From NCBI RefSeq assembly GCF_020745735.1, contig NW_026867470.1, forward strand, positions 1 through 64,000: a stretch of 64,000 nt of DNA, given 5' to 3'. How positions within the stretch are numbered: position 1 is the first letter of the stretch; each line of letters starts with the position of its first letter. Made by a program: the position numbers and the translations under genes. Positions 14,731-59,720 of this stretch are shown here, piece by piece. The notes below the pieces were generated by a model that did no database searches, had not been told where the DNA came from, and was given only the letters and a program-made list of their open reading frames with translations. Source of the stretch: Hemiscyllium ocellatum. Lineage: Eukaryota.

Positions 14731-14777
14731 TTTATTACTTCTGTTGAATTATTAAATGCAACTTTGAGATTTTTATT
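14731..14777 (-). terminator. Secretory poly(A) signals
   Basis: AATAAA at 14772-14777 overlaps the stop (CAA TAA AAA). A second AATAAA lies at 14731-14736. Confidence 0.65.
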
Positions 14778-15164
14778 GACATGAATTAACAGTGTCCATC
14801 AGTGCAAGTGAAATGTTTACGAAACTCGGTTTACCGCTGGATTTATCGACTGTTCTGTTGATGATCTTCAATGGAATCGCTTCATGTCCCACCACACAGG
14901 AGTAAGAAGCACCGCTGGCCCACTCCTCCGCTGTAATGGATAACAGGCTGTACATGAAGAAGGAAGTGTTGTCACTCTCTGCCATCACCTCGGTGTTCTT
15001 GTAGTTACTGGGATTCACCGGCTTGTCATTGTTTGTCCACTTGACGAAGATCTCTCGGGGGGAGAAACCTCTCACTAAACAGGTGAGGGAGAGAAACCTC
15101 TGAGCGGAGATTTCTTCTGTTGGTGGCAGGAGGACCGACACTGATGGCTCCAGCGGATTAATCA
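14773..15164 (-). CDS. IGHM: IgM Cmu4 exon plus secretory tailpiece
   Basis: ctgcag|TG ATT AAT. Encodes [15 protein letters not shown]...[17 protein letters not shown]...YSCVVGHEA...[24 protein letters not shown], with tailpiece NIS sequon and penultimate Cys. Internal membrane-form donor G|GTAAA at 14835/14834. Confidence 0.97.
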
Positions 15165-15611: not shown

Positions 15612-15920
15612 CTTTCTCCTTGTGGATGGAGTCTCTCAGCGGAGTCGGTAGATTTTGATGGTTCACCACACATTCAAAAGTAACACCACTCAGCCAGGCT
15701 TCAGTAGAAATGTCTAATTTGCTGATCACGCTGTCGGGATTCTGTCCAGGCTGGTCAGCAATCTCTGAGCTCAGAGGCTTCTTATCTTGTTTCCAGGTCA
15801 CGCTGACTCCAGGAAGAAAATTGGACACAACGCAGGTTAACGTCACCGTCGCTTCCAGTAAGACTTGTTCGATTGGCGGTGGGAGGATTTTAACGGTGTG
15901 AGGGTGGCACTCGGTATCTT
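15612..15920 (-). CDS. IGHM: IgM Cmu3 exon
   Basis: ttcatag|AA GAT...AAA G|gtgag, 309 nt, phase 1-1. C1-set domain [32 protein letters not shown]...W...FECVVNH. Confidence 0.96.
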
Positions 15921-17880: not shown

Positions 17881-18192
17881 CCTGGAGTGCGGTGATGTTT
17901 TTACTTTGAATGTTCTCTTCGTGAGTGACCTGGCAGGTATAGACTGCGCTGTTGTACCATTCACCATAAGGGACCATCAGCCGACTCGTCACCGAGAAGT
18001 TCCCGTTCGCCTCACACACGGGAGACGTGATGAAGCCGGAATCCAAGCGTCGGCCATTTTTCAACCAAGTCACGTTGATTGCCTTCGGATGGAAATCGAT
18101 GATTGAACAAACGACAGTTGCAAACTTGCTGCTTGCGATTTCTTCACTGGAGCTCACAGTTAGGAGAAGAGTTGGTGGGAGAGGACCTGTAC
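17881..18192 (-). CDS. IGHM: IgM Cmu2 exon
   Basis: cctaaag|GT ACA...CAG G|gtaag, 312 nt. Encodes [15 protein letters not shown]...[19 protein letters not shown]...YTCQVTH. Confidence 0.96.
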
Positions 18193-21297: not shown

Positions 21298-21606
21298 CTG
21301 GACATGGCATTTCTTTGCTCTTGTGTGACCCGCTGTGTTGAACCTCACAGTAGATTTTGCTGGGGCAATCTACCGCTGACCCGGGCAGGGTTAACTGGCT
21401 GCTCAGGGTGTAGGTTCCCTTCTTGTTTCTCACTGATGGGTAAGTCTTCAATCCACCATTCGTGATTAGCACCCCACCTTTCTTCCAGGTTACCTTGGTG
21501 ACGTCAGGGGAATAGTCCATCACCAAACAACCAAAGATTGTCGAACCGGTGCTGTGCTCCTCACAGGAGGAGACCAGGCCATAAAGCGTAGGGGGAGATG
21601 GTGTCT
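21298..21606 (-). CDS. IGHM: IgM Cmu1 exon
   Basis: ttgtag|AG ACA CCA...CCA G|gtacg, 309 nt. Encodes [41 protein letters not shown]...[20 protein letters not shown]. Confidence 0.96.
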
Positions 21607-29370: not shown

Positions 29371-30978
29371 CTGGAGTTCATGAGTGGATTACTTTAATTA
29401 ATTCGAAATTTGGTTGGTCACATAATTCACTATAGCAGTTGTTTCCCGAAGAATGACTCTTCAGTTGATATTTTGTTGTAAAATGTAACTATTTATTTAA
29501 AATGCACAGATTGGGAACACCTAAAGCACTGTGCAGGTTAAATAATTCAGTTAATGTTTTATTTTTATCCTGCAAATCCAGTTTAATCAGGGACATAACA
29601 ATTAATTAACTCAAGTTATATGTGAAACTGATCAAAGCAGTGAAACTGATCTGTTCTTCATAGAATTGAGCAGAATTTCCAAATGGTCTTTGCCAATGAT
29701 CTTTTCCAGCCAGAAAATATGTATGTAGTGTACAGCGGAATTGAAAGGTGTTTCTTGATCAATTATAGCACAGTCATGGCAGTGCAAGAGCAAGAACAAT
29801 TAGAACATTAGACTTTTGAAATTCTATTTATATTTCTCTATGACTTGTAAACTGCTTAAAGACAGACCTTGTGATTGAACTAGATAGTTGAGTTTCGAAT
29901 TTGGATTGTAAAGCATGGATTAGATTAATCCTTAATTACTTATTTTAAGTGAAAATAGCACCTGAAGGTATCTGTTTTCCCTTCATTTCTAAAACCTTTG
30001 CGATTTGCCTTTCACTTTATAGTAGACTTTATGAAATTTTAACTCGCATGCTGATTGCATTGAATGAGGAAAGAGCAGTTCACTGTCACCAACCGTGTTA
30101 ACATTGCAAAAACAATGTAGAAACCAGAAACGGTTTCCCAAATATAACACATTTAATGTTACCCAAGCACAGTCCCTCCTCAACAGATCAACGATCACCA
30201 GATCACAACACGGTGTGTTTGCAGCAGAACTAGCTCTGCAAACATTTTCAACAGAACCAAGAACATGATGTCACCTCACAAATAAAACCAAATTGAAGTC
30301 TAACAAAGCTGCTCAGAATCAAGCAAACTAATGATTAAACTGAATAGAAATAACAGGTCATAATAGCAACCTTGTTTGTGAGGGGACTTAACACTTAAAG
30401 CTGTAACGTTTCTGGCAATAGTTCAATTTATTTCTAACCTGCACACCCTTCCTGATCATGACAATCTTGTGCAGCGCACAGTAGAGTGGGGTTGAAGGCA
30501 TATATTGATTAATCACCTCATGGTCAAAACAAAATTACTGAATGGACAAATATTACCACATTATAATTTTAAGTTAGTTTCAATTACGTGATCTGATCAA
30601 TTCTGCAGTTTCAGATTTAGGTCCCAAATTTTATTTTGAATGAGGCTACTCAAAACAAAATTCAGTTCGTTTACAATTAGAACGGAGTTTTTTTTAAAAA
30701 GTCAATCCATTAAAAACTCGTTTTTTTTTCATTTCTCACACATCTGGGTTTCTGCCTTAAGTTGTTTTTCAGACCGTTACAAATGGATGTCCTGTTTTCA
30801 ATCAAGCAGAGAAAAACGTGTCATATAAGTTTAACAAATGCAGAAATGATTCATGAAAAACAAAAGAACTTCACAAATATTGATAATGAAAAGTATTCCA
30901 GAGAGTCAATCTCCTCACCAGAAAGAAAACATCGATTCAGAAAGCATGAAAACGCAGATCAATTTCACAAACTGAATA

Positions 30979-31262
30979 AGAATCCAATCAACTCAATTCA
31001 ACAGAATCAAGGAAAATAAAATCAGAATCCAATCAACTCAAAACAACAGATTTGAATGAAACATAATCAGAATCCAACCAATTCAATTCAACAGAATCAA
31101 ATAAAACCATTTCAAAAGTCAATCAACACAATTCAACAAAACCAAGTAAAAACAAAGTCAGAATCCAATCAACACAGTTCAACCCGAATCAACTAAAACA
31201 AAGCCAAAATCCAATCAACTCAATTCAACAGTAAAACAAACTCCGAATCTAATCAACAGAAT
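30979..31262. repeat. 45-46 bp AT-rich tandem repeat, about 6.5 copies, in the J-C intron
   Basis: AGAATCCAATCAACTCAATTCAACAG core starts at 30979, 31024, 31069, 31114, 31160, 31206 and about 31244. Confidence 0.85.
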
Positions 31263-31775: not shown

Positions 31776-31814
31776 CTGAAGTCACTGTCACCATGGTCCC
31801 TTGGCCCCAAATAT
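31776..31814 (-). CDS. IGHJ: JH segment with 5-nt D-like 5' remnant (joined DJ)
   Basis: ATATT TGG GGC CAA GGG ACC ATG GTG ACA GTG ACT TCA G|gtaag = WGQGTMVTVTS. Phase-1 donor matches Cmu1. Confidence 0.93.
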
Positions 31815-31842
31815 CACTGTGAGACACGTTGTGTCAAATACT
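31815..31842 (+). other. 12-bp-spacer RSS flanking DJ
   Basis: Heptamer CACTGTG (31815-31821), spacer AGACACGTTGTG, nonamer-like TCAAATACT (31834-31842). Confidence 0.8.
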
Positions 31843-31864
31843 ATGACAGACTGTAAACTGTAAA

Positions 31865-31887
31865 ATGCAAATAATTTCTTCACTTCC
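31865..31887 (-). promoter_or_regulatory. Octamer plus ETS/IRF-like composite site
   Basis: ATGCAAAT at 31865-31872. GGAAGTGAAG on the minus strand at 31878-31887. Confidence 0.4.
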
Positions 31888-32145
31888 TAGAAAGCAGTGA
31901 TTCAGACTCCTCGAAAAATGATTTGGTGCATTATTTCAGCGTTTACTATTCATTGTATTTTGAAAGCTTGGAATACTTTTCCAGGTTTGGTCTGCATTTA
32001 ACTTGACAATCAACACGAAGAAGGTAGAAAACAATTCTACATTTGTACAAACTAGCACGACTGGATTGTGTTTAAATTGCATCTCACATTATTTCTCGCT
32101 CCTGCCACGGTAGAAATCACCAATTTGAGATAAATCCTTGTCAGT

Positions 32146-32183
32146 GGTTATTGTATGAGGATGTCGCTGTGCACAGCACTGTG
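32146..32183 (-). other. 22-bp-spacer RSS 3' of VD
   Basis: CACAGTG (32183-32177), 22-nt spacer, ACAATAACC (32154-32146). Confidence 0.92.
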
Positions 32184-32498
32184 ACCCACTGTAGTATCTT
32201 GCACAGTAATAGATGGCGGTGTCTTCGATCTTCAGGTTAGTCATCTCCAACGCGAAAATGATGTTTGAAGTGTCTTTGGACGCACTAAATCGACCCTTAA
32301 TCGCTGGTGCATAGTTATTGTCGGATGAACTATAGTAGCTAACCAGCCACTCCAGACCCTGGCCGGGAACCTGGCGGACCCAGTGCATGTAGTAGCTGCT
32401 GAGATCGAACCCGCTGGTTTTACAGGTCAGTGTCAGGCTGCCTGAGGGACGGCCAGTCTCTGCCTCTGGCTGGGTCAAAACAACCTCCGACTGGACAC
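32184..32498 (-). CDS. IGHV: VH exon, intact, with D-like 3' extension (joined VD)
   Basis: tttttttaaag|GT GTC CAG TCG GAG. Encodes [47 protein letters not shown]...DTAIYYCAR with conserved Cys, Trp and Cys, followed by TAC TAC AGT GGG T. Confidence 0.96.
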
Positions 32499-32627
32499 CT
32501 TTAAAAAAAGACAAGAAATAAACCATGAGCGTTAATGCTGATGAAAGGATGGCTGTGCCTTTTACATTCCTGAGGTAGACTAACATTGAGACAGCAACAA
32601 AGACAGACTTAAACAAAAAACACTCAC

Positions 32628-32676
32628 ATGATAAGAAAGTCAGTAATAAACTGAGAAAAATTGTCGACACAATCAT
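32628..32676 (-). CDS. IGHV: VH leader exon (signal peptide)
   Basis: ATG ATT GTG...TTA TCA T|gtgagt = [16 protein letters not shown]. Phase 1, 129-nt intron. Confidence 0.93.
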
Positions 32677-47700: not shown

Positions 47701-49230
47701 AATAAAGTTTGGGTTCATGAAAGGCAGGTCATGTTTAACTGATTAATTGGAATTCTTTGAGGTCATAATGAGTGTGGTAGACAATGGGGAACTGGTGAAC
47801 GTGGTGGATCTGGATTTCCAAATGGCATTCAGCAAGGTGCTGCACAAAAGAGGCGGCACGGTGGCACAGTGGTTAGCACTGCTGCCTCACAGCGACAGGG
47901 ACCTGGGTTCGATTCCCGCCTCAGGCGACTGACTGTGTGGAGTTTGCACGTTCTCCCCGTGTCTGCGTGGGTTTCCTGGGTGCTCCGGTTTCCTCCCACA
48001 GTCCAAAGATGTCAGGTGAATTGGCCATGCTAAATTGCATAGTGTTAGGTAAGGGGTATATGTTGGGGTATGGGTGGGTTTCGCTTCGGCGGGTCAGTGT
48101 GGACTTGTTGGGCCGAAGGGCCTGTTTCCACACTGTAAGTAATCTAAAAAAAAAGGCTGCTGCATAAGATAAAGATGCACAGTGTTACAGGCAATGCATT
48201 AGCATGGACAGAAAACTGGCTAACTAACAGAATGCAAAACATGGGGATAAATGGGTGTTTTTCTGGTTGGCAATCAGTGGCGAGTGGTGTGTTTCAGGGA
48301 TGAGTGTTGGGACTGCAATTGTTTACAATTCAGGTCGATTGCTTCGAGTTAGAGATCCAAGTGTAGTGTGTTGTAGTTCGCAGAAGGCACTTAAATGAGT
48401 GATAGAGCAAAGTGTGCAGGAGGATATAGACAGGTTAAGTGAGTGGGCAAGAGTCTGGCAGATGGAGTACAATGTTAGTAAACGTGAGGTCATCCATTTT
48501 GGGAGGAATAATAACAAACAGAATGCTGCTGTGCAGGGGGACTTGGCTGTTCTTGTGCATGAAACACAAAAGTATGGTTTGCAAGTACAGTAGCTAATTA
48601 GGAAGACAAATGGAATAGTGTCCTTCATTGGCAGTGGATAGAGTTTAAAATTAGGACTTTCTGCTGCAGCTGTATAGGGCGCTGGTGTGACCATGCCTGG
48701 AGTACTCTGTACACTTTTCATCACCTTACATGAGATGGCATTGGGGTGGGGTTTGCTGAGGAGGTTGATTATGTTGATTGTGGAAATGAGGGGGTTGGCT
48801 TGTGAGGAGAGATTGAGCAGACTGGGATTATACTCATTGGAATTCAGAACAATGTGGGAGGGGGGTTGTAAAATTATAAATGGGATAGATAAGACAGAAG
48901 CAGGGAGGCTATTTCCACTGGTGGGTGAAATTAGAATGACGGGGCATAACCTCAAAATAAGGACAACAGATTTAGGACTGAGTTGAGGATCAACATCTTC
49001 ACCCAAAGGGTTGTGAAGCTGTGGAATCCCCTGCCTAGTGAAGCAGCTGAGGCCAACCTGTTGAATGGTTTAAAGGTAAAATAGATTTTTTAACAGTAAA
49101 GGAATGGAGGGTTATAGTGAGCGGGTGCGTAAGTGGAATCTTAGTCCATTGAAAGATGATCCATGATGATATTGAAAGGCAGAGCAGACTCGTGGGGTCA
49201 GATGGCCTACTCCTGATCGTATTTCTAATG
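47700..49230 (+). mobile_element. CR1 RT/3' fragment split by a SINE
   Basis: FQMAFSKVLHK before the SINE resumes as RLLHKIKMH after it. Confidence 0.85.
47851..48150 (+). mobile_element. Young full-length V/HE1-type tRNA-derived SINE
   Basis: A box TGGCACAGTGG, B box GGTTCGATTCC, A-rich tail and AAAAG duplication (47846-47850 and 48151-48155). Confidence 0.9.
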
Positions 49231-57319: not shown

Positions 57320-59720
57320 GGAGAAAGTGAGGACTGCAGGTGCTGGAGATCAGAGCTGAAAATCTGTTGCTGGAAAAGCGCAGTAGGTCAGGCAGTATCC
57401 AAGGAGCAGGAGAGTCGACGTTTCGGGCATGAGCCCTTCTTCAGGAATGAGGAAAGTGTGTCCATCAGGCTAAGATAAAAGATAGGGAGGAGGGACTTGG
57501 GGGAGGTGCGTTGGAAATGCGATAGATGGAAGGAGGTCAAGGTGAGGGTGTTAGGCCAGAGTGGGGTGGGGGCGGAGAGGTCAGGAAGAAGATTGCAGAT
57601 TAGGAGGCGGTGCTGAGTTCAAGGGATTTGACTGAGACAAGGTGGGGGGAGGGGAAATGAGGAAACTGGAGAAATCTAAGTTCATCCCTTGTGGTTGGAG
57701 TGTTCCTAGGAGGAAGATTAGGCGCTCTTCCTCCAGCCGTCATGTTGCTATGGTCTGGCGACAGAGGAGTCCAAGGACCTGCATGTCCTTGGTGGAGTGG
57801 GAGGGGGAGTTGAAGCGTTGAGCCACGGGGTGGTTGGGTTGTTTGGTCCGGGTGTTCCAGAGGTGTTCTCTGAAACATTCCGCAAGTAGGCAGCCTGTCT
57901 TCCTAATATAGAGGAGGCCCCATCAGGTGCAGCGGATGCAATAAATGATGTGTGTGGAGGTGCAGGTGAATTTGTGGTGGATATGGAAGGCTCCCTTGGG
58001 CCTTGGAAGGAAGTAAGGGGGGAGGCAATTTTGCATCTCTTGCAGTTGCAGGGGAAGGTGCCGGGAGTGGAGGTTGGGTTGGTGGGGGGTGTGGACCTGA
58101 CGAGGGAGTCACGGAGGGAATGGTCTTTTTAGAATGCTGATAGGGGAGGGGAGGGAAATATATCTCTGGTGGTGGGGTCTGTTTGGAGGTGGTGGAAATG
58201 ACGACGGATGATACGATGTATATGGAGGTTAGTGGGGTGGTAGGTGAGGACCAGTGGGGTTCTGTCCTGGTGGCGATTGGAGGGGCGGGGCTCAAGGGCA
58301 GAGGAGCGGGAAGTGGAGGAGTTGGGGTGGAGGTCATATTCGATCACGTCTGGGGAGATATTGCAGTCTTTGAAGAAGGAGGCCATCTGGGCTGTACGGT
58401 ATTGGAACTGGTCCTCCTGGGAGCAGATGCGGCGGAGACGAAGGAATTGGGAATATGGGATGGCGTTTTTACAGGGGGCAGGGTGGGAGGAGGCGTAGTC
58501 TAGGTAGTTGTGGGAGTCAGTCGGTTTATAGTAAATGTCCGCATTGATTCGGTTGCCTGAGATAGAAAGGGAAAGGTCTAGGAAGGGGAGGGAGGTGTCT
58601 GAGATGGTCCAGGTAAATTTGAGGTCGGTTGGTAAAGTGGATGAACTGTTCAACCTGCCTCCACGAGGCAGCGCCGATACAGTAATCAATGTAGCGGAGG
58701 AAAAGGTGGGAGGTGGTGCCAGTGTAGTTGTGGAAGATGGACTGTTCCACATATCCTACGAAGAGGCAGGCTTGGCTGGGGCCCATGCGGGTGCCCATGG
58801 CAACTCCTTTGGTTTGGAGAAAGTGGGAGTGTTGGAAAGAGAAGTTGTTCAGGGTGAGGACCAGTTCAGTCAGTCGAAGGAGGGTGTCAGTGGAAGGGTA
58901 CTGGTTGGTACGGCGGGAAAGGAAGAAGCGGAGGGCTTTGAGGCCTTCATGATGGAAGATGGAGGTGTACAGGGACTGGATGTCCATGGTGAAGATAAGG
59001 CGTTGGGGACCGGGGAAGCGAAAATCATAGAGGAGGTGGAGGGCGTGGGTGGTGTCCCAAACGTAGGTACGGAGTTCTTGGACTAAGGGGGACAGGACCA
59101 TGTCGAGGTATGCAGAGATGAGTTCTCTGGGGCAGGAGCAGGCTGAGACAATGGGTCGGCCGGGGCAGTCAGGTTTGTGGATTTTGGGCAGGAGGTAGAA
59201 ACGGGCGGTGCGGGGTTGTGGGACTCTGAGTTTGGAGACGGTGGATGGGAGATCCCCTGAGGTGATGAGGTTATGGATGGTCTGGGAGATGATGGTTTGG
59301 TGGTTGGAGATGGGGTCATGGTCAAGGGGGCAGTAGGAGGAGGTGTCCACAAGCTGGTGTTTAACCTCAGCGGTGTAAAGGTCGGTGCGCCAAACTACTA
59401 CCGCGCCTCCCTTGTCTGCCGGTTTGATGGTGAGGTTGGGGTTGGAGTGGAGGGAGTGGAGGGCTGCACATTCTGAGGGTGAGAGGTTGGAGTGGGTAAG
59501 AGGGATGGAGAGGTTGAGGTGGTTAATGTCACGGCGGCAGTTGGCTATGAAGTGATTGAGGGCAGGTAAGAGGCCAGCACAGGGTGTCCAGGTGGATGGG
59601 GTGTGTTGGAGGCGGGAGAAGGGGTTGTCAGAGGGTGGGCGAGAATCCTGGTTGAAGAAGTAGGCACGGAGGTGAAGTGGCAGAAGAATTGTTCGATGTC
59701 TCTCCGCGTGTTGAACTCGT
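57320..59720 (-). mobile_element. Penelope-like retroelement, 5'-truncated (RT plus GIY-YIG, frameshifted; hammerhead motif at 57413-57448)
   Basis: ORF 58526-59350 FYLLPKIHK...GRPIVS...MDIQSLYTSI...KGVAMGTRMGP...FLRYIDY, where the catalytic YIDD is changed to YIDY. ORF 58129 KPTDSHNYLDY. GIY-YIG region near 57700-57960. Confidence 0.92.

Follow-up and report, generated by a model that had tools for sequence, protein, structure and literature searches.

The window, a 64-kb stretch of DNA from Hemiscyllium ocellatum, carries an IgM heavy-chain cluster on its minus strand, which runs from 32676 down to 11879 and consists of a leader-V unit, a J, four constant exons (Cmu1-4) and the membrane exon TM1, with all exons open and splice sites present. 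Leader-V, J, Cmu1-4 and TM exons on one strand within ~20 kb are the layout of a cartilaginous-fish IgM cluster. The leader exon (32628-32676, minus strand like every cluster feature given below) starts with an ATG at 32676, encodes 16 residues and a split Cys codon, and is followed by a gtgagt donor at 32627. It is nearly identical to the leader of Chiloscyllium punctatum P0001, and the TATA/promoter block upstream of it is intact and conserved with the C. punctatum clusters. The V exon (32197-32498) encodes the end of the leader, VQS, and then EVVLTQ...YYCAR in an open frame with the conserved Cys/Trp/Cys residues; the top matches of this domain, a Pfam V-set, are shark IgM VH sequences, with C. 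punctatum at 85% and other sharks next.

The constant region follows with Cmu1 (21298-21606), Cmu2 (17881-18192), Cmu3 (15612-15920) and Cmu4 (14773-15164), the last of which includes the secretory tail, a stop codon and an overlapping AATAAA, and ends with TM1 (11879-12006; …WTTASTFITLFFLSIFYSAAVTLVK). An earlier note on this DNA, made from the sequence alone, had called the gene otherwise intact, and promoter, leader, V, Cmu1-4 and TM1 indeed are. A processed or retro-copied origin was ruled out, as the cluster still has its leader intron and its J-C intron. The J-Cmu intron contains an A-rich 45-bp tandem repeat (30975-31231; 5.7 copies, 75% matches) ~550 bp downstream of J, and the intron surrounding this repeat aligns at ~90% with the C. 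punctatum clusters. No second Ig cluster was found in the 64-kb window, the remainder of which contains LINE-like fragments. A weak reverse-transcriptase match, below the Pfam cut-off, lies at 58526-59350 (minus strand) and a GDSL-esterase ORF fragment at 1018-1452 (minus strand); both are probably LINE remnants flanking the IgM cluster.

Recombination signals between V and J

The V exon ends in TGT GCA AGA (32205-32197) and runs without a break into the 13 nt TACTACAGTGGGT (32184-32196), a D1 remnant fused to V, in which D1 is without its first A and V without its usual terminal GAC. Directly behind it stands a recombination signal (RSS) with a 22-nt spacer (32146-32183), composed of the heptamer CACAGTG (32183-32177), the spacer (32176-32155) and the nonamer ACAATAACC (32154-32146; 8/9). 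This signal is identical at 35 of 38 positions to the D1 3' RSS of the C. punctatum cluster L001, and its nonamer is the same as that of a second C. punctatum cluster, L005. The next 303 bp (31843-32145) are ~93% identical to, and colinear with, the D1-D2 intergenic DNA of L001 and L005. They lead to an RSS with a 12-nt spacer (31815-31842), with the nonamer AGTATTTGA at 31842-31834, the spacer at 31833-31822 and the heptamer CACAGTG at 31821-31815, and all of its 28 positions are identical to the D2 5' RSS of both C. punctatum clusters. The heptamer of this second signal abuts ATATT-TGGGGCCAAGGG. Here ATATT (31810-31814) is a D2 remnant with the joint, ATAT being the first 4 nt of D2 and T the base that follows, and beyond it lies a truncated J (31776-31809), TGG GGC CAA GGG ACC ATG GTG ACA GTG ACT TCA G (WGQGTMVTVTS), with a gtaag donor next.

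The earlier note had described a V ending in TGT GCA AGA, followed by 13 nt and a 22-spacer signal, and a 12-spacer signal ~355 bp away and directly before ATATT; each of these was located, on the minus strand, and the distance from heptamer to heptamer is 355 bp. The pair is not a chance occurrence, given that a signal combining an exact heptamer with an 8/9 nonamer was found once in the 64-kb window and in 0 of 200 block shuffles, and given the near base-for-base homology of the two signals to the bamboo-shark D1 3' and D2 5' signals. They are also the only two credible RSSs beside Ig coding sequence within the 64 kb. The other RSS-like matches in the window (e.g. at 47865 and 48178) have no Ig exon adjoining them, and their flanks resemble a shark SINE.

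A lax scan of the 355 bp for further RSSs gave only noise with 5/9 nonamers. Together with the colinearity of this stretch with the D1-D2 intergenic region, this rules out a hidden D between the signals and upholds the note's statement that no other RSS or D lies there. An ordinary J with a 12-RSS of its own was rejected as well, since the RSS and the 300 bp upstream of it are homologues of the D2 flank. What is retained is a D1 3' 22/23-RSS and a D2 5' 12-RSS, convergent around D1-D2 intergenic DNA, as in a VD-DJ cluster; with spacers of 22 and 12 nt, consensus heptamers and convergent orientation, the leftover pair obeys the 12/23 rule, as the note had maintained.

A perfect Ig octamer occurs at 31865-31872 (gene strand ATTTGCAT), 22 bp upstream of the nonamer of the D2 12-RSS and inside the DNA to be deleted by the last join. 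The corresponding bases are ATCTGCAT in the two C. punctatum clusters, so the octamer is probably a chance match and not a conserved DJ promoter.

Unjoined relatives and the two joints

Four C. punctatum loci (L001, L002, L003 and L005) and the whale shark locus L004 served for comparison, and pairwise and three-way alignments gave the correspondences with D1, D2 and their flanks. L001 is an unjoined IgM cluster of the plan V-23 / 12-D1-22 / 12-D2 / 23-J: its V ends in ...TGTGCAAGAGAC followed by a 23-RSS, its D1 (ATACTACAGTGGGT) has a 12-RSS on one side and a 22-RSS on the other, its D2 (ATATAGCTGATG...) stands behind a 12-RSS with the same nonamer as in the window, and its J (ACTATCTTGACTAC-TGGGGCC...) behind a 23-RSS. 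L005 (BEZZ01002017.1) has an L001-like plan with ATATAACTGGGGTGA as D2. The D2 of both clusters begins with ATATA..., and the C. punctatum J takes the form ACTATCTTGA(C/T)TAC + TGGGGCC..., again behind a 23-RSS. Neither of these unjoined reference clusters is free of damage: in L005 the V exon is frameshifted and its heptamer has mutated to CGCAGCG (4188-4490), and L001 has no recognisable D2 3' RSS (5296-5345).

Relative to L001, a V-D1 stretch of ~440 bp is cleanly absent from the H. ocellatum cluster, and with it the V 23-RSS, the intergenic DNA and the D1 12-RSS; the 13 nt after the V end align to L001 as D1 minus its first base, so that V and D1 are fused. A D2-J stretch of ~210 bp is absent just as cleanly, together with the D2 3' RSS, the intergenic DNA and the J 23-RSS, and D2 and J are likewise fused. 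The alignment to unjoined C. punctatum clusters thus bears out the central proposal of the earlier note, namely that V-D1 and D2-J were already joined and that one 22/12 pair is left. The note had pointed out that the proposal would fall if unjoined V genes natively ended in the 13 nt. They do not: the V of C. punctatum and of the nurse shark ends in the same motif as in L001, closing with AGAGAC and followed by a heptamer, and in both species D1 is a separate RSS-flanked segment, the nurse shark Group 2 germline references matching C. punctatum in the V end and in D1 alike (PMC2435157, Fig. S1). Assembly collapse was also discarded as a source of the pattern, as it would not yield RSS-bounded deletions.

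The close relative allows each joint to be read base by base. At the V-D1 joint, V is without GAC and D1 without its first A, though the loss from one or the other may be a base smaller; in all, 3-4 nt were trimmed and none added. On sequence grounds, RAG is a well-supported candidate for the agent of this join, because what was removed is precisely a 23-RSS/12-RSS pair with the intervening DNA, at a coding loss of 3-4 nt, which is the RAG signature. At the D2-J joint, ATAT is the start of D2, TGGGGCC... is J from the Trp codon on, and at most one base (T) was added. The 5' part of J is missing ~14 nt (LDY-type residues) relative to the C. punctatum J, which agrees with the observation in the note that J lacks FDY-type 5' residues, and the share of D2 that was retained is either 4 or ~10 nt, where D2 may have read ATAT... 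or ATATTTGGGG.... RSS remnants were found at neither joint.

The D2-J fusion can also be read as a microhomology deletion that would not need RAG. The motif TGGGG is common to D2 (ATATAACTGGGGTGA in L005) and to J (...TACTGGGGCC), and the window reads ATATTTGGGGCC. Extending this reading, an inherited cluster could owe its D2-J fusion, or both fusions, to replication slippage or microhomology deletion, or else its joined halves could have met when a VD-D-J cluster crossed over unequally with a V-D-DJ one; the loss of ~14 nt of J, greater than the 4-6 nt lost in RAG-made somatic joints, is consistent with such a history, and the 303-bp intergenic homology between clusters (~90-93%) would permit the crossing-over. 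We nevertheless regard an origin that was not wholly RAG-made as unlikely, considering the precise removal of a single signal pair at the V-D1 joint, the lack of RSS remnants at both joints, and the fact that slippage with a D2 of the L005 type should give ATATAAC-TGGGG, which differs from the ATATT-TGGGG present here unless extra changes are assumed. Since the predicted product does not match exactly, we prefer trimming with at most one extra base as the putative origin of the D2-J joint over a TGGGG-mediated join, a D2 variant being also conceivable.

Additions at these joints bear on whether the joining took place in the germline or in lymphocytes. In nurse shark spleen DNA, additions amount to 2-14 nt at 11 of 11 V-D1 joints from VD-D-J and VD-DJ clones and to 3-9 nt at 4 of 4 D2-J joints, where only 4-6 nt of J were lost (PMC2435157). 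The N/P additions typical of TdT-positive precursors are lacking in the H. ocellatum cluster, where 0 and at most 1 nt were added, compared across species with 2-14 in all 15 nurse shark joints. Germline-joined shark L-chain genes, for their part, have lost nucleotides at their joints and display 'little evidence of TdT activity' (PMC2193156). Other shark assemblies also contain joined clusters, of several types: two C. punctatum loci are VDD-J clusters in which a 12-RSS is left facing the J 23-RSS (L002 5670-5740, L003 4445-4510), and the whale shark locus (L004, NC_063338.1, 4465-4540) is a fully joined VDJ.

Could the assembly instead have captured, from lymphocyte-rich tissue, one allele of an ordinary V-D1-D2-J cluster that was partway through rearrangement (2R, VD-DJ)? 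B cells and thymocytes of the nurse shark do contain VD-DJ as a somatic intermediate, since their segments are joined in no fixed order (PMC2435157; JS8 and JS51 are examples). A consensus assembly would, however, have to come from a clonally dominant cell population to represent such an allele, the near absence of added bases is at odds with the somatic joints just described, and the range of joined clusters in other assemblies speaks against it too; we therefore consider a somatic intermediate highly improbable. We infer a germline rather than a somatic origin from the N-poor joints, which resemble those of germline-joined L-chain genes, from the frequency of joined clusters in related assemblies, and from the expectation that consensus assemblies normally leave out rare alleles from lymphocytes. 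Our best explanation, to which we assign a probability of roughly 0.85, is a complete orectolobiform (bamboo-shark-like) IgM cluster that is partly joined as VD1-D2J in the inherited genome.

The last join and its relation to known joined genes

Under the inherited VD1-D2J explanation, an ancestral cluster of the form V-23 / 12-D1-22 / 12-D2-12 / 23-J would have lost two RSS-bounded intervals. A RAG-type deletion would have fused V and D1, trimming 3-4 nt and adding none, and D2 and J would have been fused with heavier loss, D2 being reduced to as little as ATAT and J by ~14 nt. The 22-RSS/12-RSS pair that remains would then flank the 303 bp of D1-D2 intergenic DNA. Because its signals converge and have spacers of 12 and 22 nt, a single deletional join by RAG is predicted to suffice in B-cell precursors: it would excise these 303 bp together with both signals and complete the V exon. 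Diversity would be confined to a single junction, through trimming and P/N addition. Translation of the joined sequence gives CAR-YYSGYI-WGQG for an untrimmed, N-less join, which is in frame because the 13 + 5 coding bases make up six codons. The suggestion in the note that this gene would need a single rearrangement and have one diversified junction fits the sequence, with only one 22/12 pair remaining and the coding potential intact, and the gene may be used in the antibody repertoire.

A less favourable reading is that the cluster, although inherited and able on paper to recombine, is seldom if ever rearranged or expressed, and so contributes nothing to the repertoire. This is a real possibility, because germline-joined H-chain genes of the horned shark were reported without detectable expression (PMC2193156), even if we think it the less probable outcome. 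The J part of CDR3 has been lost, the dN/dS of the V exon against C. punctatum V genes is 0.5-0.75 and is a weak sign of constraint, and pseudogenes are present among the bamboo-shark clusters, as in L005 with its V frameshift and mutated V heptamer and L001 with no D2 3' RSS. Against silence stand the integrity of all exons and splice sites, of the TATA block and of the two RSSs, the fact that a direct join is in frame, and the conservation of the D2 5' RSS, unchanged from C. punctatum at 28 of 28 positions while the flanking intergenic DNA is ~7% different.

The putatively inherited VD1-D2J locus is not a new kind of gene, since germline VD-DJ clusters are already listed in a review (PMC5192425). 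By all sequence-level criteria it would belong to this known VD-DJ germline-joined class. Partly germline-joined IgM clusters (VD-J, VD-DJ) were, by the citation given in PMC2193156, first described in Heterodontus francisci by Kokubu et al. (1988). Partially rearranged H-chain clusters are mentioned in PMC2193156 itself, and joined classes are described more generally in PMC4279169. Our literature search for germline descriptions of hemiscylliid IgH found nothing specific, and none of the 20 database matches listed is a VD1-joined V protein. What distinguishes the present cluster is its heavily truncated J, an in-frame direct join, and the existence of a close unjoined relative against which each joint can be resolved.

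Several known systems share part of this organization. Like the partly joined IgM clusters of the horned shark, the H. ocellatum locus is a cluster-type gene with segments fused at RSS borders, a 12/23-compliant pair left and an otherwise intact structure, but it belongs to a different species and its unusually truncated J results in a CDR3 of six residues on direct joining. Its topology is identical to that of the somatic 2R VD-DJ of nurse shark Group 2 (Malecek et al., 2008; PMC2435157), with which it also shares D1 and the V end; the latter, however, carries 2-14 N/P nt and a J trimmed by 4-6 nt, compared with 0 and at most 1 added nt and a J trimmed by ~14 nt here, and it is a minority species in lymphoid DNA, whereas the present one is an assembled locus. 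The nurse shark IgM1gj and other fully joined VDJ genes (e.g. whale shark L004) presumably arose by the same germ-cell joining process. IgM1gj-type VDJ genes have no RSS left and an invariant CDR3, whereas the cluster described here would need one RAG step and has one diversifiable junction; IgM1gj also lacks Cmu2, in contrast to the four Cmu exons retained here.

A further parallel at the joints is with the germline-joined nurse shark NS4 (kappa) L-chain genes (Lee et al., 2000; PMC2193156), which show nucleotide loss, little sign of TdT and wholly excised RSSs, and which sit among closely related split genes (PMC2193156). NS4 genes are light-chain genes that are fully joined by a single V-J join, whereas here a heavy-chain gene has been made light-chain-like and one-step. 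In the VD1-D2J cluster, RAG-type joining that was probably fixed in the genome of a shark can be followed cleanly and at base resolution, and each junction can be dissected because an unjoined relative is at hand, something that was hard to do in the older horned-shark comparisons (PMC2193156). The established picture of shark Ig genes is unchanged by it; it shows a route by which a heavy-chain gene of four segments can be reduced to a light-chain-like one that needs a single step, diversifies at one junction and has a short CDR3. It is tempting, but at present rather doubtful, to see in this cluster a member of an expanded and maintained family of 'one-step' heavy-chain genes in Hemiscyllium ocellatum that rearrange in the manner of light chains and favour a short, semi-invariant CDR3 (YYSGYI). 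Were there such a family, it could furnish an early-life or innate-like IgM repertoire quickly and without TdT, and would stand between IgM1gj-type and conventional clusters.
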